Virus record (IMG/VR): IMGVR_UViG_3300047322_001237
Location: 214,989-278,988 of that record
Direction: 5' to 3' (one strand)
DNA: 64,000 nucleotides
Part shown: positions 7,679 through 42,523 of the stretch, piece by piece
How positions within the stretch are numbered: the first letter of the stretch is position 1
Layout of the letters: each line of letters starts with the position of its first letter
Program-made: the position numbers and the translations under genes
The notes under the pieces: model-generated
Database searches by the model: none
Seen by the model: only the letters and a program-made list of their open reading frames with translations
Told to the model about the DNA's origin: nothing

Positions 7679-8392
7679 CTACGCGCCGGTCGCCGCGAGG
7701 ATCGATTGCATCGCCGTTGGCGCAAGCGTCCTCGCAGGCTTGCTGGAACGTCCATAGGGACTGAGCAAGATCGGCGACGGCTTCAGTGCTAAATCGAAAG
7801 GCTCGACACCGATGGGACCTTTTCGCTTCACGATGTTGACCGAGACGCCGTCGGCTGCTGGCCGGATGGCGAGTCGCAGCGACGCGGGCGATGTGTCCTG
7901 CTGCACGGCAAGCGGACGGAAAACGAAAAACAGCATCTCCGACGACTGCGAGACCAGTAACAGACGCCGCAGCGATTCGGGACGCATGTGCTGCTGCCAC
8001 AGTAAGACCGCCCCGCATGTATTCGCCTTCAGTATCTGCTCAGTCGACCAGAGCACGTCCGCCGTCTTTTCGACCTCCAGCCGAATCAACTTCTCCGGCG
8101 GAACGCCGATATACGCGAGTCCCTGGACGTTCGGAACATGTGGCGGTTTGATTAATACAACAGGCCGTTTCGCCACCGTGGTCAGCGCCGGCTGCAACAT
8201 GCGCACTTCGCCGATCCCTGGCTGTTGGACTAGCAGTTCGACCAAGGTGCCAATCGGCCACCCCCCGCCAGGCAATTCCGCCGATAGCCGGTCGTAGCCG
8301 GTGTCGACCGTGCGCCCTGCCCTTCTTGCCAACTGGTTACCGCGCCAGAGGGACGGGTGGATTTCTTCAATGTCCTTGGGAAGTGCTGACAT
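7679..8392 (-). CDS. imuA: translesion synthesis-associated protein ImuA (RecA/SulA-like)
   Basis: HPSLWRG, TGYDRLSAELPGGGWPIGTLVELL and PASLRL are typical ImuA segments. Start set at ATG 8392, downstream of the SOS box. Confidence 0.88.
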   Translation of the reverse strand: MSALPKDIEEIHPSLWRGNQLARRAGRTVDTGYDRLSAELPGGGWPIGTLVELLVQQPGIGEVRMLQPALTTVAKRPVVLIKPPHVPNVQGLAYIGVPPEKLIRLEVEKTADVLWSTEQILKANTCGAVLLWQQHMRPESLRRLLLVSQSSEMLFFVFRPLAVQQDTSPASLRLAIRPAADGVSVNIVKRKGPIGVEPFDLALKPSPILLSPYGRSSKPARTLAPTAMQSILAATGA

Positions 8393-8407
8393 CGTCGCGC
8401 CTAAACA

Positions 8408-8423
8408 CTGTATAGATGTACAG
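8408..8423. promoter_or_regulatory. LexA (SOS) box
   Basis: CTGT-ATAGATGT-ACAG is an exact CTGT-N8-ACAG, 15 bp upstream of the imuA ATG. Confidence 0.9.
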
Positions 8424-8908
8424 TATCCTACACCCTTTTTCGCGGCGCATCGTCTACCACTTAGGGAACCGCTTGGAGAGACAGTTAGTTGCGTGGTGAA
8501 AACCACAAAAAACGTATCATTCATTACGTTTTGGCGCCGTGACTGTCTGCCAACCTCGGCCGACTTCCGGATCACGTCAAAGAACGCTTGCCAGCGGCCA
8601 CTTAGTTCTTTTTCCGTGAAACATTCCCCGCGAGCTGCCGCCGACGCCTTGATTTAGAACAAGTTGGCGCCTTCGAAAATTTGTCCCGAGTGTTTCACGG
8701 GACGTCATTCGAACTTAAGACTACTTCGAGGTTCCACGCCCTCTTCCCCGCCCTGCTTGACCGACAAAAAGTGACAGTACAGCGAAGTATACTTGCTCTG
8801 CCCTTGTTTACAAGCTAGAGTTCGACACAATTCGGTCGTGCGCCGCATTCTTCGGTCGAAGGTGATTTTTCGAAAAACCGAAGAATCCACAACAAAGGGG
8901 AACCTCTC

Positions 8909-10111
8909 GTGAATGCAAGCACTCTGCTCGCCAGCGGCCTGCCGCCGGCGCTTGACTACGCCGCGTCCATGGACACATTGGCTGATGTGTCCGCCCGTGC
9001 CTCGGGTGTTCTAAATCAGATCCGCGATCGGATGCTGGAACCATATCCGCGCAAACGCCCGCCCACGTTCACGAGCGCACAGGTGGCCGGCCTGTGCGGA
9101 CTTGAAAAAATGCGTTTCCAGTATCTGACTACGAAAGGCGATCTCCCCACCGGCACGTCGATTAAAAATGGCAAGAGCAAAGTCTTTACGTTGGAAGAGA
9201 CACTACGGTATATCCGGGCTGTCGGCAATCGCCCGCCGCGACCAGAGAACGCTCCCGGCAAAGTTGTGACGGTGGCCAACTTCAAAGGCGGTGTGGCTAA
9301 GACTACGACGGCCGTCTCGCTCGCTCAGGGACTCACCTTACGCGGTCGTAAGGTTCTCGTTATCGACTGTGATCCCCAAGGCACCGCTACGCAGTTATGC
9401 GGCTTCTCGCCCGAAACGGAAATAGGCGAGGAGATGACGCTCATGCCTTTGATCTACGGCGATGAAACGAGACTGGACTACGCAGTCCAACAAACCTACT
9501 GGCAGGACCTAGACCTGGTCCCGGCGTCTTCCGGTCTCTTTAGCGCTGAGTTTCATATTCCGGGCAAGCTGGCCACCGACCACAAGTTCGAATTCTGGAA
9601 CATCTTGAATCAGGGCCTCGAAGGCCTCAAAGACAAATACGACGCCATCGTCATCGACACTCCGCCATCTCTAAGTTATCTGACGATCAATGCGTTGATG
9701 GCGGCGAACGGACTATTGATGCCCTGCCCGCCCGAGGGGCTCGACTTTGCCAGCTCCACTCAGTTCTGGTTCCTCTTCACCGAAATGTCGAGGCACGTTC
9801 CAGCAATGCGTGAGACGAAAGACTTCGATTTCGTCAATGTCGTGCTCACGAAATCGAAGAGTGACGACCTTTCCGGCGTTGTACGGGGCTGGCTGCAAAA
9901 GGCCTACGGAGATCGAGTCCTTCCGTATGAGATTCCCGACTCCGTCGTCCCGAAGAGCGCATCTGCTCAACTCTCTACCGTCTACGACCTTACCAAGCCC
10001 GAGGGCAGCGTGGCAGCCTACACCCGCTTCAAGGATCCGATGGATCAGTTGGTGAGGCACATCGACTCCCAGTTTGTACAGGCTTGGGCGTCTTCCATGT
10101 TGGAGGTCTAA
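8909..10111 (+). CDS. parA: type Ia plasmid partition ATPase
   Basis: N-terminal HTH extension, deviant Walker A KGGVAKTTT, DCDPQG and IDTPPSL. The start may be the ATG at 8969. Confidence 0.95.
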   Translation: MNASTLLASGLPPALDYAASMDTLADVSARASGVLNQIRDRMLEPYPRKRPPTFTSAQVAGLCGLEKMRFQYLTTKGDLPTGTSIKNGKSKVFTLEETLRYIRAVGNRPPRPENAPGKVVTVANFKGGVAKTTTAVSLAQGLTLRGRKVLVIDCDPQGTATQLCGFSPETEIGEEMTLMPLIYGDETRLDYAVQQTYWQDLDLVPASSGLFSAEFHIPGKLATDHKFEFWNILNQGLEGLKDKYDAIVIDTPPSLSYLTINALMAANGLLMPCPPEGLDFASSTQFWFLFTEMSRHVPAMRETKDFDFVNVVLTKSKSDDLSGVVRGWLQKAYGDRVLPYEIPDSVVPKSASAQLSTVYDLTKPEGSVAAYTRFKDPMDQLVRHIDSQFVQAWASSMLEV

Positions 10112-11106
10112 TGCGCGCCGCTCAAAGACTTAGTGAAAAGATTGGTGACATCGACATCCCAGAACCCGGTCAATCGCCGGCGGCCGGTGATCCGTTTCGT
10201 CCAAGGACGGCACCAGGTGGAGCGCTCGCCTTTCAGCATGCAATGCGCGAGAAGCAGGCCGAGCTCGACGCGATGTCCGCACAGCTGGCCGAACTGCAAG
10301 CTCAGAAGCAGACGAACTCGCCCAGCGGCGTCGAGATTCCCCTCGACCAACTGCATGAAGTCGCAGGTCGCAGACGCTACATGCCGCCGGAAAAGTACAA
10401 TGAATTGCGGGAAAACCTGCGGAACAACAAGCTGATTCAGCTGCCCGTCATTCTGCCACGTGCAGAAGGTGGCTTCGAAATACAGTCGGGACATCACCGG
10501 ATCGACGCTTATCGGGAACTCGGGCGTTCGACCATTCGCTGTGTTCTGGGTGACGCGACGGGCGATGAAGCTGACGACGGCGCGTTCTGGGCCAATCTGA
10601 TGCAGTCGGACCTGACTGACTATGAGAAGTACGTTGGACTGACGCGCGTACATTCGAAACATCCGGAATTGGGCCAAGTCGAGCTAGGCGAGCTCGTCGG
10701 CATTAGCACTTCCCACCTCAACGCCCTGCTCTCTTTCGGTCGTTTGCCTGAGCAGGCCCGCGCGATTCTCGATACCAATAAGGCGATCATGGGCGCGAAC
10801 GCGGCCGCGGCTTTTGCGGCTATCGCGGAGGCCGGCAAGGCGGAGCGGGTTGTGGAAGCGGTACGACGTCTCTCCGAGCGGGAGCTAGATCAGGCGCAGG
10901 CGGTGAAGTTTGCAAAAGCCGTTGAGACGCCCAAGGCAACGAAGCCGGCTGCTGAGTCGTACAAGGTGAAGACCGGAAAGAGTACGTGGTGCGATGTGCG
11001 CAAGACGAAAAACATCATGCGCATCGAGTTCCAGTCCGAAGAGGTGGCCAATGCCGTCCAAGAAGCCATCAAGCAAACCCTCGAGGCGCTCGCCGCAAAG
11101 TCCTAA
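10111..11106 (+). CDS. parB: ParB/Spo0J partition protein
   Basis: GHHR (GxxR CTPase motif) and a central HTH. TAATG overlap with the parA stop. Confidence 0.92.
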   Translation: MRAAQRLSEKIGDIDIPEPGQSPAAGDPFRPRTAPGGALAFQHAMREKQAELDAMSAQLAELQAQKQTNSPSGVEIPLDQLHEVAGRRRYMPPEKYNELRENLRNNKLIQLPVILPRAEGGFEIQSGHHRIDAYRELGRSTIRCVLGDATGDEADDGAFWANLMQSDLTDYEKYVGLTRVHSKHPELGQVELGELVGISTSHLNALLSFGRLPEQARAILDTNKAIMGANAAAAFAAIAEAGKAERVVEAVRRLSERELDQAQAVKFAKAVETPKATKPAAESYKVKTGKSTWCDVRKTKNIMRIEFQSEEVANAVQEAIKQTLEALAAKS

Positions 11107-11180
11107 ACGCTAAGTGCTTGATTCTTTTGATTTCCTTAGTACGGAAAAAGGAGACGGCAGTGAAATAGCTGCTAGAAACA

Positions 11181-11298
11181 CGAAGGCCCCCAGCTGGAAA
11201 CTGAGGGCCTTCGCATAAGTGGGCTTGGCTGGAAACCGTCGCTCACTACACTCCCAAGCTGGAAACTTGGAAGGGTACTTCGTCAACCCCGAGTGTAG
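11181..11298 (+). ncRNA. putative structured repA leader / copy-number control RNA
   Basis: Three contiguous hairpins (11181-11213, 11218-11247, 11247-11277), each with a CTGGAAA loop. Alternative pairing of CTACACTC (11246-11253) with GAGTGTAG (11291-11298). Confidence 0.55.
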
Positions 11299-11357
11299 CG
11301 AATAGCGATCGACAGTCAAGCAAATTCAATCCATTTTTGAGAAATGGACCGCTCGAC

Positions 11358-12446
11358 ATGTCTATCGCGCAACAGCTCGTTGCTGGCGAGGGTGAAACAC
11401 ACCCCGACGATTCAGCAGCCCTCACCGCTTTCCGGTGTGACTCGACAAACCTGCCTTGGGTCATCTTCCGGGCTGCGTTCCGTGCAGCACACATTGAGGA
11501 GATCCCTCCTCGCGCACGTGCGGTTCTTTCCGCCCTCGCCCGCACCGTCGACGCCGCCAAGCCGTTCGCCGCGATCTTCGCTCGTCGTGAACTGCTCACA
11601 GGACGCGCACTGCAATCCATGCGCACCTTCTACCGCAGCCTCGATGACTTGGAGTCCGCCGGTCTAATCGATCGCCGCGCTCAATCCCGCTACGTTGAAG
11701 CCGGTCTCTTCGGTCGTGCCTACATCCACCTCACCGCGCGAGCAGCCGAGCTTCTAGGGCTCGTTGAGTCGATGCAACCGCCCTCACCTGAGCCCGTCGA
11801 ATCTTCGCTTCCGCATCCGTCTGCCAACTTGGCAGACGGTGGAATATATAAGGATCTAAGCCCTTCTGTTTTTCAAAAGAGACAACCGGGGCAAGTGCCT
11901 GAGGATCTCCAGCGTCTGCGGTCCCTGGGTTTTTTTGATTTCTTGATTTTCAAACTCATGCGGGAAGCGCGTGAGCATGGCAAACGTCTCTCGGATGTCG
12001 TGGAAGCAACATGGGACCACCTGAAGCTCGCCAAAGCCCCAATCAACTACCTGCGGAGTCTGCTGCGGGGAACGGTTGATTTCGCTCACCAACTGCGCGC
12101 CAGGATTAACGTCAAAGCCGAGGAGCAGGCTCGGGTGAAGCGCACCTTGGAAGCCGATCAGGTAGCCCGTCAAAGCGCCGGCAAAACGTTCCTAGACGCC
12201 TCGGGGGCACGCAAGTACGTGATCGATGCCGACGGCGAGAACATGGTCGTCTACAACCGTGACGAAGGCATTGGTCGACAAGCCGCGGGTTGGAAAGAAG
12301 GTTTTGCTGCAGCGCTCGCTCGAGGTCAGATCCGTGCGGCGAGCAGCTACGTGCAGCCGGAGCAGGGCAGGGAACGTCCGCCAGTTACAGCACAGGTTCG
12401 GGAACACATCGCGGGACTGCGCAGCCTGCTGGGAGCTCGTCGCTAG
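11358..12446 (+). CDS. repA: plasmid replication initiator (Burkholderiaceae RepA-type, winged HTH)
   Basis: Directly downstream of parAB. HTH-like segment RTFYRSLDDLESAGLIDRR. Internal AT-rich patches near 11841-11960. Confidence 0.8.
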   Translation: MSIAQQLVAGEGETHPDDSAALTAFRCDSTNLPWVIFRAAFRAAHIEEIPPRARAVLSALARTVDAAKPFAAIFARRELLTGRALQSMRTFYRSLDDLESAGLIDRRAQSRYVEAGLFGRAYIHLTARAAELLGLVESMQPPSPEPVESSLPHPSANLADGGIYKDLSPSVFQKRQPGQVPEDLQRLRSLGFFDFLIFKLMREAREHGKRLSDVVEATWDHLKLAKAPINYLRSLLRGTVDFAHQLRARINVKAEEQARVKRTLEADQVARQSAGKTFLDASGARKYVIDADGENMVVYNRDEGIGRQAAGWKEGFAAALARGQIRAASSYVQPEQGRERPPVTAQVREHIAGLRSLLGARR

Positions 12447-12469
12447 TCAGGACTGCTTAGTTTTTGAGC

Positions 12470-12499
12470 AAAAAAAAAAGACGGGTCCGAAGACCCGTC
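12470..12499 (-). terminator. intrinsic terminator with C(UUCG)G loop
   Basis: Minus strand reads GACGGGTC-TTCG-GACCCGTC followed by about ten Ts; it ends the lipoprotein transcript. Confidence 0.9.
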
Positions 12500-12504
12500 A
12501 AAAG

Positions 12505-13263
12505 TCAGTTGGCGAGCTGCCAGCCGTTATCCGTCAACAGCATGTAATACGTTGCCGTGTAACTGTAGCGCACGTCGTCGCTGTATTGACTCGGTTTAAG
12601 GTCAGTTGCCAGCATTGTACTAACCAGATTCGGACTGACATTCGGACATTCGGCGACAATATTTCGAGAAAACACGGATCGGATATTCTGTGCTTCTACC
12701 ACTTTGTCGTGATACGCCGTTGTCGTATCCCATGCCTTCAGCGCAGCGGCCTCAACGTCAGGATGCTGCTTGAGGTACATGTCCGAGTAGACATTGAGGG
12801 GATAGCTCACGGCGGCAGCGAGTCGGTCGTCACCTGGCTGCGACTCGCGAATCTGCGTGTTATAGGCGGCCTGCTGATCCTCAGAGAGGGACGCCCGAAG
12901 CGCATCGACCCCATCTGACACGTCTTTTGCGTATTTCTGCAGCGACGCATCCGCCTCGTCCCGTGCCTCTTTATGCGATTTAAGATACTCATCCAAGTCG
13001 GTCAAGTATCGGACGTTGGCACGTGCGGGTTTCATCACCACTTCGGCAGCCATCTGCATTTCGTAATGTCTGTCGTCGACCTTCACGCCATTGACCTTGT
13101 CGAACTTGGTTATCTTGAAGAGATCACAGTCGGCTATATGGAGATTCTGCTCGACGCCCTTGCGTACATCCGACTCGGACGGGGACTGAGAACAAGCAGC
13201 CAAGGTGGCAACCACTGAGGCGCACAGAGCCAGCCGGCCCACGCCGGTGCGCTGAATAAACAT
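12505..13263 (-). CDS. predicted lipoprotein
   Basis: Signal peptide with LAAC lipobox (MFIQRTGVGRLALCASVVATLAAC). Start set at ATG 13263. Confidence 0.8.
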   Translation of the reverse strand: MFIQRTGVGRLALCASVVATLAACSQSPSESDVRKGVEQNLHIADCDLFKITKFDKVNGVKVDDRHYEMQMAAEVVMKPARANVRYLTDLDEYLKSHKEARDEADASLQKYAKDVSDGVDALRASLSEDQQAAYNTQIRESQPGDDRLAAAVSYPLNVYSDMYLKQHPDVEAAALKAWDTTTAYHDKVVEAQNIRSVFSRNIVAECPNVSPNLVSTMLATDLKPSQYSDDVRYSYTATYYMLLTDNGWQLAN

Positions 13264-13355
13264 GATTCTTTTCCTTTCTAATTGAAAACGTTTGCCCAGA
13301 CGGGCAGGGGAGACGGGAGTCGGAAGCCGCCGCATCTTAGACGAATATCGGCAGC

Positions 13356-13363
13356 GTGATATA
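13356..13363 (-). promoter_or_regulatory. putative phage early promoter motif TATATCAC
   Basis: About 93 bp upstream of the lipoprotein start; same motif as upstream of the core early-type genes. Confidence 0.45.
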
Positions 13364-13380
13364 ACTCTTTAGGAAAAAGA

Positions 13381-13421
13381 CAAAAGAAAAACGGCCTGGG
13401 AAAACCCAGGCCGCTATGCCC
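13381..13421. terminator. hairpin CGGCCTGGG-AAAA-CCCAGGCCG with A-run on the left and CTATGCCC on the right
   Basis: Perfect 9-bp stem. The minus strand gives a T-rich tail after the 13438-13968 gene. Confidence 0.75.
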
Positions 13422-13437
13422 TCAAGAGGGAAGGGGA

Positions 13438-13968
13438 TCAGTCGAAGCTATAACGCACGACTTCCTTGAGCGGGAGAATGCCGATCATCTTGCCGGACCC
13501 GCAACCCGCTACCTCGCGAAAGAGGCGCACGTAGTTGGTGTCGATGTCCTCTTCCTCGCACCATGCGAAAAAGGAGATTGGATCGATCAGGCCAACGTTG
13601 CGCTCAGACGTCCGCCATTCGCTCAGATCGCGACGGACACGATGAGCGAGCGTACTGCCGATCGAGATCTTGCGACCGTCGAACGTGGTGAGTTCATCCA
13701 TAGCGTCCAGACTGCCTTCCACAGGAAGCACGCCATTGATCAAGCAGCAAGCCATGAGGCCCGACCAGACTTTTAGCTTTAAGTAGCGAGCGACCAACAG
13801 AATTTGATCGGCTGCAGATTGCACGTTATCAATACGCGCAACTGAAACGGACGGAACGAGTACGACACCTTTTGCGTCCGTCGTTTTTTCTGCAAGGTAT
13901 TCGCGAAGTTCGACGAACGCCCGTTGGTTTGCGGCGAGGCTGTCCTCGCCAAATGAAGAATGGCCCAT
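13438..13968 (-). CDS. hypothetical protein
   Basis: 176-aa ORF, co-oriented with 13981-14301. Confidence 0.6.
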   Translation of the reverse strand: MGHSSFGEDSLAANQRAFVELREYLAEKTTDAKGVVLVPSVSVARIDNVQSAADQILLVARYLKLKVWSGLMACCLINGVLPVEGSLDAMDELTTFDGRKISIGSTLAHRVRRDLSEWRTSERNVGLIDPISFFAWCEEEDIDTNYVRLFREVAGCGSGKMIGILPLKEVVRYSFD

Positions 13969-18752: not shown

Positions 18753-21002
18753 TCAATGAGTGAGTGCTGCTTGCTGTTTTGCCAGGTTGCCGCTACGGCC
18801 TTTCCAAGACGGCGAGTAGGGTCGATAGACGAACTGGACGCCAGCGCACGCGAGGATGTGCTTGACCAACTGCAACGGACGCGAGTTGCCGTACGGGATG
18901 ACCGAACGATCAACGGCGTTGTGGATATTGGTCGGCTCGTCTGCATCGAGAATCGCGTTACAGACCATCTCGTGCGTTTGCGGATTGTTGTTGCGATCCA
19001 TGACCTCGGCCGATGCCCGCGGTCCAACGTACGATGCCAAGATCCGCTTTTCCGCCTCGCCCCATGCACGAATCGACTGTGCACGGTAGGGCAGGGCGTA
19101 CTTGTCGGCGTTGGTCACCTGAGACAGGACACCGTAGTGCTGAACCTTGCCCGACGACACGGCCGTCCAGTCGTCCGCGATCTTTTCCAGCAGGATGATG
19201 TACACGCTGCCAATCCGCACCGGGACCTTGGTCGTCACGCGTCGACCAGAGTTGCCGACGTAAGTCACGGGACCGTACGTCGACGGATAGTTGGCTTCGA
19301 GCATCCGAACGATGTCACTCGACTCGCGCGGGTTGTTCGTCGGCAGATGCAGATAGATGCCGTTGCGAATCACCTGAGCCAGGTGTTCCGCACGCGTCTT
19401 CAGATACGCACCACCTTCAAACCACGAGTGCATGACAGGTGCCACGATTTCGTAGTAACCCATCAGGTAGTTCCACGCGTGATCGAACACCGGCTTGTTG
19501 CTCGCCTCGAGTTCCTGCGCCTTCGCCAATGCCTGACGATCGTTCTCCGCGATGCCGAACCATGCACGAATCTGCTTGGCCACGTCACGCGAATGTGCGT
19601 TGATGTAGATCTCGTACTTGCGGCCGAGATTCATCCGCGACACCGTCGAGTTCGGGTCCATCACGATGTCTGCACGATTGCCATCCGCGTCGACCGGCAT
19701 GTGATCCGCGGGCACGACGTTACAGATCACGCCCTTACCACCGTGCGTGTCGGTCAGCTTGAAGCCGATCGTCGGCGTGACGTCGTACTCGATCGTGAAC
19801 TCGATGCGCCAGTCATCCAGCGGAGCCTTGCGATACAGCTTGTAGATGCGCTCCTTGGATTCCTGGACCACGGACAGGGCTTCGACCACGAGACGATGGA
19901 ACTCCGGCGTCAGACGCAGGGACTCCTTGCGCTCGCGCTCAAGGCGTCGCCATTCGTAAACGATGTCCGAGTAAAACTGACGACGCGCCCGATCGTAACG
20001 ATCAGCCTGAGCATCCATGCCGATCGGCGTCGGCGAGTTGTTCGCCTGCGTATCGTGATGAACACGGATGTCGATCACCCGGCCGCCTGCACCGTCTGCG
20101 TAGATCATCTTGTCAAAAACGTGATCGATCTCCATCAGGTCGTACGTGCCTTGCTCGACGATCGCCAACTCGCGGTCGTAGCTTTTCGGATCCTTGTCGT
20201 GCGGACGCAGTGCCATCAGCACGCCGTCTTCACGAACGAATTCACCGATGTCCGGGAACGCCTTGAAGTTGTCCTCGTCACCGTACAGATTCAGCGGGTA
20301 GGCCTTGGCGCCAAATTCGACGACACGCGTCTCGTACTTCTTGAAGCCGAATTCTTTGAGCACCTCCGCGCTGATCATGATGCCGTCCTCAGAGGTGGCC
20401 GGATGACTCATGTACGCGATGTTGCATTCACGCCCGTACTTGTAGCCGCCCGTATCCGTCACAGAGGGAGAATCCGTGAGGATCGTGTCCGCCTTCAGAT
20501 AGCTGCCCACGCGGATGTCGGAAAGCGAAGGCTTGATCGCGTTCCGGAACCCGAAGTAGCTGTGATACGACGTGTGCGTCGTGATGTTGATGCAGCCGAT
20601 CTCCTTCGTGTGCACGTTCTCGTAAATGAGCACGCTGTGCGGGTTGTCCTGGCGGCGCTTGAGCACCGTGTCCTGTCCGAACGTTTCGCGATAGCGGTCG
20701 ATCACCTTGATCACTTCGCAGTCGACCGGCACCTTCGTCGAGAAGGTGTACTTGCCGAATTCACGTTCCGTGCCGCTCTGGCAGCGGCGCTCGGTCGAGC
20801 CCTTGATCACGAGACATTGACCGACGTGCGACGAAAACATCTGTTTGCGGGCAGCCGAGTTATGGCCGTCCCACGGGTTCAACCCGCAAACGTTCATGAG
20901 CTCCGGGTCCAGCTCATTCGGTTCTTCCAGCAGAACACCCGAGCGACGAATCGCGGATGTCATGGGCTTGATGCTCGCAGTCAGACTGGCGGTGTCCATC
21001 AT
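18753..21002 (-). CDS. non-virion RNA polymerase beta subunit (phiKZ gp71-73-like)
   Basis: RpoB-like motifs SEDGIMIS, GFKLTDTHGGKGVI and DIVMDPNSTVSRMNLG. Confidence 0.92.
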   Translation of the reverse strand: MMDTASLTASIKPMTSAIRRSGVLLEEPNELDPELMNVCGLNPWDGHNSAARKQMFSSHVGQCLVIKGSTERRCQSGTEREFGKYTFSTKVPVDCEVIKVIDRYRETFGQDTVLKRRQDNPHSVLIYENVHTKEIGCINITTHTSYHSYFGFRNAIKPSLSDIRVGSYLKADTILTDSPSVTDTGGYKYGRECNIAYMSHPATSEDGIMISAEVLKEFGFKKYETRVVEFGAKAYPLNLYGDEDNFKAFPDIGEFVREDGVLMALRPHDKDPKSYDRELAIVEQGTYDLMEIDHVFDKMIYADGAGGRVIDIRVHHDTQANNSPTPIGMDAQADRYDRARRQFYSDIVYEWRRLERERKESLRLTPEFHRLVVEALSVVQESKERIYKLYRKAPLDDWRIEFTIEYDVTPTIGFKLTDTHGGKGVICNVVPADHMPVDADGNRADIVMDPNSTVSRMNLGRKYEIYINAHSRDVAKQIRAWFGIAENDRQALAKAQELEASNKPVFDHAWNYLMGYYEIVAPVMHSWFEGGAYLKTRAEHLAQVIRNGIYLHLPTNNPRESSDIVRMLEANYPSTYGPVTYVGNSGRRVTTKVPVRIGSVYIILLEKIADDWTAVSSGKVQHYGVLSQVTNADKYALPYRAQSIRAWGEAEKRILASYVGPRASAEVMDRNNNPQTHEMVCNAILDADEPTNIHNAVDRSVIPYGNSRPLQLVKHILACAGVQFVYRPYSPSWKGRSGNLAKQQAALTH

Positions 21003-33524: not shown

Positions 33525-35492
33525 TTACTGGTTGGACCAGCGGCTGAAGCCAGCGCGGGCGCCGTACTGCTGTTGTTGCGGGTGCGCGAAGCCGCGGTTG
33601 AACACCGAGCCGTTCATCGAGCCCGTATCCAGACCAGCCGACACTGCGTACGGGTTCACCGCGCGCTCGTACTGGTTCAGATCCGTCATCGGGGCGATGG
33701 TGCGCACCGACAGACCCGTGTCCTTGCATGCGTTCAGCAGCGCGACGATGAACGCCGGCTCGAAAGTCACGCGGCGTGCGAAGCCGGTGAACTCGACGTT
33801 GTTCTTGCCGAGGATGCCTTCGATGATGTGCTTGCGCTTCGCCAGACGAACTTGCAGGTCCAGGTTCGTGCGTGCGAACGTATCCGACCATTCGCGTGCA
33901 ACTTCCGGATCGCGATCGCCGACCATGTTGAGCACGGCCAGGTAGTCGATCTCGCGGAGGTCGCGCTTCACGCCGTGACGGTCGACGTACCAACCCAGGT
34001 GGATGCGGTTGAATTCGTCGGACGCCACGCGGCCGCCGGCCTGGAAGTAACGGCTGAAGTTGCCGTGCGTGAGCACGTTCGCCGCGCGGATGATGATTTC
34101 ATTCGCTTTCTGCCAGTTGTTGCCGCTCAGCTCAGCAGCTGCTGCGAAGATGCCGTTGAACCAGGTCTGCGGACCGCACTCGGGCACGTCCAGCGAGAGG
34201 ATGAGCTTCGGCGTGATGACCGAGCCAACCAGACGCAGGAGGTGGTCGCTCGTCTGACCTTGACCGCGCTGGAACGCATCCGACTTCGTGTCGACGCGCG
34301 AGCCGAAGCCGTTCGGGTTCTTCTCGAAGTTCGCTTCGATGCCGATGGCGCCGATGTCCTTCCAGTCGATTTCCGCGCTGTTGCTCATCGGTGCCGGACG
34401 GAATGCCTCGACCCATGCGTGGTTGTCGGCCAGCGTGAACGCCGTCACGAGCGCCAGCAGCTGCGCCGGAATCGTGAGCAGCTTGACCGACTCGAGATCG
34501 GTCATCACGAAACGCGGACGGTAGCGCTTGAACTCGTCCGGCGACGACGGCTGAGCCGTCTGCTGGACCCACGGGTCGAAGCGTTGCGTCTGCTGTTCGG
34601 TCGGCGCCCACACGAGGTCCATGTAGCCGCTGATGCGCGAGATCTGCGACACACGCTGGGTCACGCCTTGCTGGCCCGGGATTTCCTGCCCGCCTGCGCG
34701 GAAGTCGATGACGATGTCCGAACGGATCGGTGCGCCGACCATGTCACGCGACTGGCCGTTGCCGAACGTCGGCTGAACGGTCAGCGAGTTCTCTTGCTCG
34801 ACGGTGCCCAGGTCCAGGTCCTGGAAGCCGCCCGGCTGACGCACTTCGAGTTCGGTCTGGCACGCCGTTGCAGCGTTCGCTGCCAGCTCGTGAACCAGCG
34901 TCACGTCGTCGACGTTGAAGTCACGCGGCACCACGCATGCGTCCACCGGCCAAATCGGCATGCCCGGGAACGTGCGCGACACGGCGGCGAGCACTTCGTC
35001 CGACAGCGTCTTGTTGTTGACGTCGCCGGTCACGCGCAGGATTTCCGTGTTCGTGTTGTTGATCATCTGGTACGCGACCTGCAGCGGCTCGCTCGAGCCT
35101 TCCAGAATCAGGGTGTGACATGCCACGCCCGTTTCCTTGTTCATCAGGTCACGCATCGCGACGACGATCACCGACTTCACGAGCGACTGCGTGTTGTTGT
35201 AGTCGATCGGGATGAGCGTGACTTCGTAGCTCTTGTCGACGCCGGCGAACACTTCGGTCAGTGCCTTCTCGAGTTTCGTGATGACTTCGCTCTGCGGATT
35301 GCGACCCATGGCGGCACGCGAGAGGCTGCCCAGGTCGGACAGGCGGGTGCGTTGCGTCGGGCGCTGCGCTGCGCTCGGGGCGGCTTGCTGCTGGGCTTGC
35401 GCCGACTGCTCCATCTGACGGCTGAATGCAGCGCCCATCGAGGTTTCTGCTGCTGCGCCTTGCTTGCTGCCGTTGGTGTTGTTCACTGCCAT
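33525..35492 (-). CDS. chmA: chimallin, phage nuclear shell protein
   Basis: 655 aa directly upstream of the NADFDGD subunit. Segments FVMTDLE, LSLDVPECGPQTW, IDYLAVLN and GFARRVTFEPAFIVAL match my recollection of ChmA; disordered termini. Confidence 0.85.
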   Translation of the reverse strand: MAVNNTNGSKQGAAAETSMGAAFSRQMEQSAQAQQQAAPSAAQRPTQRTRLSDLGSLSRAAMGRNPQSEVITKLEKALTEVFAGVDKSYEVTLIPIDYNNTQSLVKSVIVVAMRDLMNKETGVACHTLILEGSSEPLQVAYQMINNTNTEILRVTGDVNNKTLSDEVLAAVSRTFPGMPIWPVDACVVPRDFNVDDVTLVHELAANAATACQTELEVRQPGGFQDLDLGTVEQENSLTVQPTFGNGQSRDMVGAPIRSDIVIDFRAGGQEIPGQQGVTQRVSQISRISGYMDLVWAPTEQQTQRFDPWVQQTAQPSSPDEFKRYRPRFVMTDLESVKLLTIPAQLLALVTAFTLADNHAWVEAFRPAPMSNSAEIDWKDIGAIGIEANFEKNPNGFGSRVDTKSDAFQRGQGQTSDHLLRLVGSVITPKLILSLDVPECGPQTWFNGIFAAAAELSGNNWQKANEIIIRAANVLTHGNFSRYFQAGGRVASDEFNRIHLGWYVDRHGVKRDLREIDYLAVLNMVGDRDPEVAREWSDTFARTNLDLQVRLAKRKHIIEGILGKNNVEFTGFARRVTFEPAFIVALLNACKDTGLSVRTIAPMTDLNQYERAVNPYAVSAGLDTGSMNGSVFNRGFAHPQQQQYGARAGFSRWSNQ

Positions 35493-40354: not shown

Positions 40355-42523
40355 TTAGGCGGCTTCCGGCTGTTTCACTGGTGCAGCCATGTGGTCACTG
40401 ACCAGGCGCGTCATCTGTTTGTTTTGCATATAGATCCCGAGCGATTCAAGTATGATGTAAAACACAGTCACGGTATCCGTGATGAGCTTACGGATCGCGA
40501 TCTCGCTTTTGATCTCCTTCGGGATGCCCTTCGACTGGATGATCTGCTCAGGCACGTGGAAGGTGCTGATCGCCTTCTTTCCGCTCTTGGCCAGCCAGTT
40601 CTCCAGCTTCGCCGCCAAATCACGGTCTTCCATCTTGGCGAGCCACGCCTTGATCTTCACCGGGGACTTGAGGTCCACGGAGATCTTCACCGAGTTGTAC
40701 GGCGGCTCCTGCACTTCGCCGTACTTCGTGCCGAACGTTGCATTCCAGAAGGTGTAGTGCGCAAAATTGCTTTGCTCGGGAGGGAGCGTGTACGAAGCCG
40801 CAGGTTTAATCTGACCCATGCGGAAGTATTCGTAGCTCGAACGCTCCATAATCGAGTCACGGATGTCGTGCTCCAAACCCGCGATCTCGCCCATGATGTC
40901 CTTCAGCTTCACGGGCTCTTCGCGCATCACTGTGTCCATGATCCGGATCATCATCTCTTTCGCCTTCTTCATCACCGCAGGCGGTGCGTTTGACGACTTC
41001 AAGTGCACGCCCTTGATCTCCGGCTCCTGTGCCTTGTAGAGGTTGCCTTCCTGACAACCGATCGAGGCGTAGTAGTGCTTGGCCACCTGCGTGGGAACGA
41101 ACACGTCGAACTTGTACTCGTTCTTCATCGCCACCTGGAAGATGCGGCTTTCCTCGATGCCGAAGTTGGCGGACATACGCGCGAGCACGTGCGTGATGGT
41201 CTGCGCAGCCAAAAAGATCATCGTGGCGGCCACACCCGACGAGCGGTCGTCGTAACCGAGGCGGCCGTCGTTGTACCAGACCACCCAGTCCTGGACTGTA
41301 AAGATGGTCGAGTCTGTATCTCCCATCAACGCCGAGCGGCGGATGCTGTCCGGGAAGTGCGCGAGGGAGGCCGGGACGTTCTTCGTCACCCAGAACGCCT
41401 TGATCAGGTTCTTGTACTCGGTGATGACCTGACCGATGTGCGCAACAGTCGATGCGAGGATGCCGTACGCGTCGGAACCGACCACGTCCTTCACCTTCTT
41501 GCCCTTCATCTCTTTCGGACAGAGTTGCGAGGCGAGGGCGATGTGATCCTCGTGCGCGTTCTTGATGATACTGTCCGGATCCGGATGTACCTCACCGACG
41601 CGGGACGACAGCTCATGCACAAACCGGTAGACGATCTCCCGGTTGAACTTCATCAGGTGGTACAGATCGCCCGTGTAGACGAATGCGCTGCGCTGGATGT
41701 CGGTGAGCTTGCTGACATACTGCTCGATCAGGCGATGCGCTGCTTCGTCACGGAAGTAGAGCTGGGTGGAGTAACGAATGCACTCCATCGTCTCTTCGAC
41801 GCTCGGATGACGAATCCCGAACTCGTTCATCGCCAGCTGGATCGACTCGTAGTCCGTGTTGGTGACGATCGAGACGATGTTGTTCTTGACGATGTCCGGC
41901 GACCAGTAATGACGGTTGCCGTTCAGAAACTTCTCGTTGTTGGCAGAGCCATAGCCCGCCGTCGACCGGCAGTTCGAGGTCAGGGTCGAGTGTGCAGTCT
42001 TGTTGAACAGTGGCGTCGACGCACTGACGTGAGCACCCGAACACGCGTTGTTCGAGAGCTTCATGTTCGTCTGCTCATTGTCTTTCAGAATCTCGAGGAT
42101 CTTGTTGCCGTCCATGCGAGCCTGGAACATGGCCTTCTTCGCCACGCCGCGACGCTTCACGTTCGCGTCAATGAACCCTGCCAGCAACGACTTCTTCACC
42201 GTCGGGTGATAGTAGGTCGTGAGGGTCGGAGCAATGAGCTGATGCTCTTTGATCGACTCCGAAAGGTAAGCGCCGAGCGTGCCTTCCACCTGCTCGCGAT
42301 CGCCGTGCTCGTTGCGACGCAGGAACATCACCGCCGGATCCTTGAACGCGAACTTGCCGTCCGGGCGCAAGTTGTTTTTCACGAACGCCAAACACTGCTC
42401 GCGCGGTGCACCGGTCATTGTGGAGAGGTACTCGACGCTCTGATCGATGTAATGCTTGAAGACATCCAGATCGCGCCTGTACTCGTTGGCGGGCAGGACG
42501 AAGGGATTGTCGAACGTGGACAT
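40355..42523 (-). CDS. family B DNA polymerase, catalytic subunit (phiKZ gp50-like)
   Basis: KLSNNACSG (motif B-like), MGDTDS (motif C) and EIKGVHL; 722 aa with no exonuclease domain, as in split phiKZ-type polymerases. Confidence 0.9.
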   Translation of the reverse strand: MSTFDNPFVLPANEYRRDLDVFKHYIDQSVEYLSTMTGAPREQCLAFVKNNLRPDGKFAFKDPAVMFLRRNEHGDREQVEGTLGAYLSESIKEHQLIAPTLTTYYHPTVKKSLLAGFIDANVKRRGVAKKAMFQARMDGNKILEILKDNEQTNMKLSNNACSGAHVSASTPLFNKTAHSTLTSNCRSTAGYGSANNEKFLNGNRHYWSPDIVKNNIVSIVTNTDYESIQLAMNEFGIRHPSVEETMECIRYSTQLYFRDEAAHRLIEQYVSKLTDIQRSAFVYTGDLYHLMKFNREIVYRFVHELSSRVGEVHPDPDSIIKNAHEDHIALASQLCPKEMKGKKVKDVVGSDAYGILASTVAHIGQVITEYKNLIKAFWVTKNVPASLAHFPDSIRRSALMGDTDSTIFTVQDWVVWYNDGRLGYDDRSSGVAATMIFLAAQTITHVLARMSANFGIEESRIFQVAMKNEYKFDVFVPTQVAKHYYASIGCQEGNLYKAQEPEIKGVHLKSSNAPPAVMKKAKEMMIRIMDTVMREEPVKLKDIMGEIAGLEHDIRDSIMERSSYEYFRMGQIKPAASYTLPPEQSNFAHYTFWNATFGTKYGEVQEPPYNSVKISVDLKSPVKIKAWLAKMEDRDLAAKLENWLAKSGKKAISTFHVPEQIIQSKGIPKEIKSEIAIRKLITDTVTVFYIILESLGIYMQNKQMTRLVSDHMAAPVKQPEAA

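Follow-up and report, generated by a model that had tools for sequence, protein, structure and literature searches.

The window analyzed here is a 64,000-nt stretch (64 kb) of the IMG/VR virus record IMGVR_UViG_3300047322_001237 (positions 214,989 to 278,988), and it contains a plasmid-type partition and replication module. A gene for a RepA/SopA-like partition ATPase (parA; 8909 to 10111, plus strand, 400 aa) is followed by parB (10084 to 11106, plus strand, 340 aa), which overlaps the end of parA, and by a putative replication initiator gene (rep; 11358 to 12446, plus strand, 362 aa from the conserved ATG). ParA matched Pfam AAA_31 (E 2e-37), PHROG phrog_164 (ParA-like) and NCBIfam partition_RepA (E 2.8e-63), the last with 214 bits against a cut-off of 348. 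ParB matched only generic ParB models, including NCBIfam parB_part (E 8e-10) and PHROG ParB-like families (E 1e-14). No family was found for Rep in Pfam (no match even at E <= 10, including RepC and RepC_C), NCBIfam or PHROGs. A PDB sequence profile, Foldseek and VIA-align identified only a generic winged-helix domain, which the AlphaFold model places at residues 45-136 (matches at Z about 7). PGAP names the plasmid homologs 'Replication protein O' or HTH protein. The initiator function is therefore inferred from position and naming, and 'repA', as used in an earlier reading made from the sequence alone (hereinafter the sequence-only reading), is only a label. An ImuA-like translesion-synthesis protein (7679 to 8575, minus strand; NF033429, E 8e-64) is encoded divergently from parA.

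The record is a virus of 278,988 bp with direct terminal repeats. Between 15114 and 42523, the window encodes an RNA-polymerase beta-like subunit (18753 to 21002, minus strand), a chimallin (33525 to 35492, minus strand; PF25677, E 3e-48) and the divergent family-B DNA polymerase of chimalliviruses (40355 to 42523, minus strand), showing that the record is a chimallin-encoding (nucleus-forming) jumbo phage. PHROG-matching phage genes lie on both sides of the module (7679 to 12446), and GC content is uniform. The nearest named phage is Burkholderia phage FLC9, whose chimallin is 44% identical.

The sequence-only reading had reported a repeated 9-mer, with an identical CTGGAAA loop in three hairpins, in the spacer between parB and rep, and this observation was confirmed. 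GCTGGAAAC was found at 11193-11201, 11228-11236 and 11258-11266, and the variant GCTAGAAAC at 11171-11179. In the whole window, 4 exact copies were present against 0.76 +/- 0.84 expected, and none of 100 shuffles reached 4; three of the four lie within 74 nt. Both strands of 11107-11360 folded far better than shuffles (z -4.1 for the plus strand and -5.8 for the minus strand). The first copy caps HP1 (11181-11213), with 13 stem positions and a 7-nt loop, including one C/A mismatch on the plus strand that is a G·U pair on the minus strand. The second lies at the apex of HP2 (11218-11247), which consists of an outer stem (11218-11224 with 11241-11247) and a 2-bp apical GG/CC stem. The third caps HP3 (11254-11270), with a 5-bp stem. 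The 8-bp helix formed by 11246-11253 and 11291-11298 (helix P), which had been read as an alternative fold, also exists and is conserved, but it closes a three-way junction (11246-11298) holding HP3 and a fourth hairpin, HP4 (11273-11289; 4-bp stem, 9-nt loop), and overlaps only the last 2 bp of HP2. The variant at 11171 is not a hairpin apex but part of an A-rich tract, described below.

To examine conservation, homologous loci were collected. The parAB-rep block matched 132 PLSDB plasmids or chromids of Burkholderia, Paraburkholderia, Caballeronia and others, whereas the spacer alone matched 77, including Mycetohabitans, Cupriavidus and Pandoraea; no GenBank phage was found with the block by DNA search. 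We gathered 37 loci from genome contigs, 8 named plasmid loci, 5 IMG/VR loci and further hits from a covariance model searched in 151 genomes of the family, of which 19 had the element. One 9.4-Mb genome, of Caballeronia arationis, held five strong copies and one weak copy, indicating that several replicons of this family coexist.

Single-sequence folds of 44 homologs all gave HP1, HP2 and the junction of P, HP3 and HP4. On a MAFFT alignment of 43 spacers, 15 pairs changed on both sides, in 109 cells against 38.9 +/- 7.1 in shuffles and at most 20 when partners were slid. On a model-based alignment of 65 distinct sequences, from Burkholderiaceae plasmids and chromids and from five viral contigs, 20 of 32 pairs changed on both sides, in 184 cells against 60.4 +/- 7.4 in shuffles and at most 35 when slid, and 90% of cells were paired against at most 53% when slid. 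The latter alignment leans towards the structure, although the MAFFT result agrees with it, and phylogenetic relatedness of the sequences inflates the shuffle-based significance. In HP1, 95% of cells were paired and 7 of 13 pairs changed on both sides; in HP2, all 3 pairs of the core did so, and its apical GG..CC changed to GA..TC in 5 homologs, while a sixth, with GA..TA, kept only one of the two pairs. Helix P was 89% paired with 3 pairs changing on both sides, all 5 pairs of HP3 changed on both sides, and in HP4 2 of 3 modelled pairs did so with 83% of cells paired. The sequence-only reading had stated that conservation of the 9-mer without the pairing would count against an RNA structure; the reverse was found, the pairing being kept while the 9-mer varies.

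A sigma-70-type promoter was identified on the minus strand, with a -35 box TTGACT (11319-11314), a 16-nt spacer and a -10 box TACACT (11297-11292). It was the only promoter-like site found in 10900-11500, against 0.1 expected, suggesting that rep is probably co-transcribed with parAB. Among 61 homologs, the -35 box was TTGACT in 59, the -10 box was TACACT in 53 and TAAACT in 8, and the spacer was 16 nt in all 61 although 44 different spacer sequences occurred, which is the signature of a functional promoter. A plus-strand promoter, TTGGCT-16-TACACT at 11225-11252, was considered and rejected, since its spacing varies from 13 to 26 nt among homologs, its -10 box is not conserved, and it would start the RNA inside HP3, contradicting the plus-strand selection seen on P and HP2.

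HP1 followed by a U-tract (11172-11180, the A-rich tract on the plus strand that includes the variant motif) has the form of an intrinsic terminator on the minus strand. The 13 nt on the 5' side of HP1 held a mean of 8.1 A (read as U on the minus strand), whereas the plus-strand tail held 4.7 T. A weak alignment to the Rfam model ctRNA_pGA1 covered this hairpin and tail on the minus strand. Together, the promoter and terminator bound a predicted countertranscript (ctRNA) of about 110 nt that would start about 7 nt after the -10 box, near 11285, and end near 11172. It is predicted to fold into a 5' tail and three hairpins (HP3', HP2' and the HP1' terminator), each presenting UUUCCAG, at -50.8 kcal/mol (z -4.6). 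A search with 9000-12400 listed no RNA run holding this sequence, and the transcription, ends and strand of the ctRNA are all inferred.

Cells that pair as G·U on only one strand indicated the strand on which each helix was selected. Minus-only against plus-only cells numbered 22 to 3 in HP1 and 25 to 1 in HP3, but 13 to 40 in P and 3 to 13 in HP2. This places HP1 and HP3 in the antisense RNA and P and HP2 in the sense leader, as would be produced by an antisense RNA starting between HP4 and P and a sense leader containing P. The 3' arm of P overlaps the -10 box, and P therefore cannot form in the predicted ctRNA.

Within each replicon, the loops and top base pairs of HP1 and HP3 were usually the same or one edit apart, whereas they differed between replicons (13 and 15 distinct loops, respectively). 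Over 25 unique combinations, the mean edit distance was 1.72, against 2.53 +/- 0.18 when permuted, and 1 of 20000 permutations was as low, although relatedness of the sequences is again a caveat. The sense loop in the window begins with CUGG, which fits the YUNR pattern, as the sequence-only reading had noted. One loop allele in relatives gives an antisense loop UUGGCG, the motif reported for IncI-alpha Inc RNA (Asano et al. 1998, cited in PMC10724649).

A leader mini-ORF was identified upstream of HP1 (11148-11168, plus strand), with an SD-like AAGGAG (11148-11153), GTG at 11160, one sense codon and TAG at 11166-11168, 12 nt before HP1. Under a strict SD rule, an SD, a start codon, 0-5 codons and a stop ending 5-20 nt upstream of HP1 were present in 42 of 63 homologs, against a mean of 6.8 and a maximum of 14 in shuffled sequences; most of the other homologs have the same arrangement with a weaker SD, and in several homologs the ORF is just ATG-stop. 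Between the antisense -35 box and the rep ATG lies HP5 (11330-11348), an inverted repeat with 7-nt arms and a 5-nt loop that was nearly invariant in 32 homologs with no covariation. Its 3' arm holds the only SD-like GGA, 10-12 nt before the rep ATG, and it is also terminator-like on the minus strand. HP5 could be an RNA hairpin that hides the SD or a DNA operator. RNAalifold also proposed a long-range helix between 11223-11231 and 11313-11321, but one side is invariant because it is the -35 box, and no two-sided covariation was seen.

Just after the parB stop codon, within 11107-11147, an IHF-consensus-like site was found (WATCAANNNNTTR; 11111-11123, minus strand). In relatives (loci L039, L041, L043 and L045 of our collection, at about 2360-2470) it is paired once or twice with replicon-specific palindromes of 14-19 bp, suggesting a probable centromere region, likely of P1 style (parS plus IHF).

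The same module was found in three other chimallin-encoding IMG/VR records (G154, G157 and G158) from two divergent lineages, all with parA, parB, the RNA element and rep on the same contig as chimallin and in similar position relative to it. G154 shares 91% identity with the window in chimallin, 45% in ParA, 48% in ParB and 78% in Rep, and an 81% identical copy of the ImuA-like protein is encoded beside its module. In G157 and G158, the chimallin is 37-38% identical, whereas ParA is 90%, ParB 84% and Rep about 60% identical. Relatives (compared at loci L084, L087, L088 and L001) thus share either the parAB side (ParA 90%, ParB 84%, Rep 60%) or the rep side (Rep 78-83%, ParA 45%), and the switch in identity falls inside the RNA element at about 11250-11300, near the antisense promoter, so the par and rep halves recombine within the element.

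We consider a cis-antisense copy-number control system to be the best explanation of the parB-rep spacer, with a probability of about 0.68. In this view, the minus-strand promoter would be constitutive, and the ctRNA would run leftwards through HP3', HP2' and HP1'. The sense RNA, most likely continuing from parAB since no plus-strand promoter is seen in the spacer, would carry the complementary hairpins with CUGGAAA loops, of a YUNR U-turn type, folded as HP1, HP2 and the three-way junction (P, HP3, HP4), ahead of the SD-poor rep start. Loop-loop kissing followed by duplex formation would take apart the leader junction and lower rep expression, either by changing access to the start region around HP5 or by exposing the duplex to RNase, giving negative feedback on copy number and probably incompatibility. 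No plus-strand attenuator lies downstream of the target, so translational control or RNase-mediated decay is favored. Cis-antisense pairing alone does not require matched loops; because the HP1 and HP3 loops (and here HP2) are identical, any antisense loop could nucleate on any target loop, which we take as a way to raise the binding rate. The position of the mini-ORF stop suggests that ribosomes modulate HP1 folding in the sense RNA. What the analysis establishes is the structure with its conservation and covariation, the promoter and terminator signatures and the strand asymmetry, whereas it is by inference that the RNA is made, that it has the ends given, that it represses rep and sets copy number or incompatibility, and by which mechanism. 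Several points weigh against this reading: no plus-strand structure that would directly couple antisense binding to rep translation or termination was identified, the invariance of HP5 means that covariation cannot show it to be an RNA helix, and on inspection no loop-complementary sequence near the rep start covaries with the loops, ruling against an IncI-like pseudoknot. In addition, two replicons of the Caballeronia genome mentioned above share the same loop allele but have different stems, which is awkward if loops alone decide incompatibility. The interpretation given in the sequence-only reading is thus partly supported: its main inference, an antisense RNA and/or leader controlling the replication gene, fits the comparative evidence, but its alternatives of a GGA-loop protein array and of an alternative helix are not supported, and its suggestion that lytic induction uncouples plasmid control remains conjecture, although the record is a phage.

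Among other explanations, a sense-only cis-regulatory leader is the least unlikely. HP1 would then simply be the parAB terminator or attenuator governed by the mini-ORF, and HP2, P, HP3 and HP4 a structured 5' UTR of rep, without a functional antisense RNA. The plus-strand selection on P and HP2, the conserved mini-ORF and, in many homologs, the A-tract and short U-tract flanking HP1 like a bidirectional terminator are in accordance with this. However, it does not explain the conserved minus-strand promoter with its variable spacer sequence, the longer U-tract on the minus strand or the mismatches in HP1 and HP3 that are G·U only on that strand, and the sense features fit just as well as the target half of an antisense system. 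Somewhat less likely is an array of identical RNA loops bound by a protein, either a Csr/Rsm-type GGA binder or a replicon-encoded loop-specific RNA-binding protein co-evolving with the loops, that would control rep in place of RNA-RNA pairing. The matched loops, which differ between replicons, and the GGA in the loops of the window favor it, and a loop-specific protein is the main rival as an explanation of the loop matching. However, many homologous replicons have loops without GGA, so CsrA/RsmA cannot be the general ligand, no candidate RNA-binding protein was found in the module, and the minus-strand promoter and terminator signals would remain unexplained. DNA-level sites (iterons or operators for Rep, parS for ParB, or a cruciform origin element) are improbable despite the three direct copies with 35- and 30-bp spacing next to par and rep genes and the possible operator HP5, since stems differ between the hairpins of one replicon yet stay complementary within each and covary across homologs, the 9-mer is not conserved across the family, the G·U pattern points to selection at the RNA level, the palindromes beside the IHF-like site are better centromere candidates, and no convincing iteron-like direct repeats were found in 8300-13600.

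A further possibility, which we regard as doubtful, is that the module is a working low-copy plasmid replicon of a nucleus-forming jumbo phage, that this 279-kb virus and its relatives persist as plasmid prophages (jumbo phage-plasmids), and that the antisense RNA with its matched loops gates the change between plasmid-mode and lytic replication. The phage genes flanking the module, the uniform GC content and the recurrence of the module in the three related records support this idea. Also in support, two of those records have identifiers of a form that would denote isolate genome projects in IMG numbering. No phage in the GenBank collection searched has this Rep; ParA-type genes there were at most 35% identical, and the rows shown were known phage-plasmids such as N15. 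A preprint on persistent chimallin phages in Escherichia isolates found no plasmid genes in its set (10.1101/2024.12.31.630880).

The element defines an uncatalogued structured RNA family, found in 19 of the 151 sampled genomes of the family, in 77 PLSDB plasmids or chromids of Burkholderia, Caballeronia, Paraburkholderia, Mycetohabitans, Cupriavidus and Pandoraea, and in six viral records. No description of it was found in literature searches covering reviews of secondary replicons and the B. cenocepacia replicon study, whose chromids are described as iteron-based. It gives a testable control mechanism for a widespread replicon type whose initiator has no family assignment. The matched loops, the mini-ORF and the coexistence of up to six such replicons in one genome make it a natural system for studying how antisense specificity and incompatibility evolve, and its presence in chimallin-encoding jumbo phages raises the possibility of plasmid-like carriage in a phage group that is regarded as strictly lytic.

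No Rfam family, including ctRNA_p42d, ctRNA_pGA1, ctRNA_pND324 and ctRNA_pT181, was matched at its gathering threshold in the window or in 12 homologous loci. The best sub-threshold hit, ctRNA_pGA1 (RF00236), reached 13.9 bits against a gathering score of 45 (E 5.5), which is at chance level; only HP1 with its U-tail aligned, the first hairpin of the model was missing, and the element is not a member. The closest analogues are the repABC ctRNA and the IncFII/IncI antisense systems. ColE1 RNA I is likewise a three-hairpin antisense RNA that kisses three complementary target loops (in RNA II), but its three loops differ from one another, it controls primer maturation and not an initiator gene, and there is no par linkage. 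In the antisense systems of IncFII (R1 CopA/CopT with the tap leader peptide) and IncI-alpha/IncB (Inc RNA with the repY leader peptide and pseudoknot), hairpin loops of the U-turn (YUNR) type nucleate kissing and a short leader ORF is part of the control region. The present element resembles them in loop chemistry and leader ORF, including the UUGGCG allele, but its mini-ORF lies upstream of the antisense target and is only 1-6 codons long, no pseudoknot partner covarying with the loops was found, several identical loops are present instead of one or two different ones, and there is no sequence similarity. The ctRNA of alphaproteobacterial repABC replicons (RepE of pTiR10, inc-alpha of p42d; Rfam ctRNA_p42d) is about 50 nt with one stem-loop, in contrast to the predicted RNA of about 110 nt with three hairpins and a three-way-junction target described here, Rep shows no RepC family match, and the hosts in the present case are Betaproteobacteria and a phage. 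The gene order is nevertheless the same, with a ParA-type gene, a ParB-type gene, an intergenic countertranscript (predicted in the present case) and then the initiator gene, and the antisense RNA, with a presumed role in negative control of the initiator and incompatibility, lies on the opposite strand with its intrinsic terminator next to the ParB gene (PMC6090056), suggesting that betaproteobacterial parAB-rep replicons arrived at the same layout as the alphaproteobacterial repABC operon.
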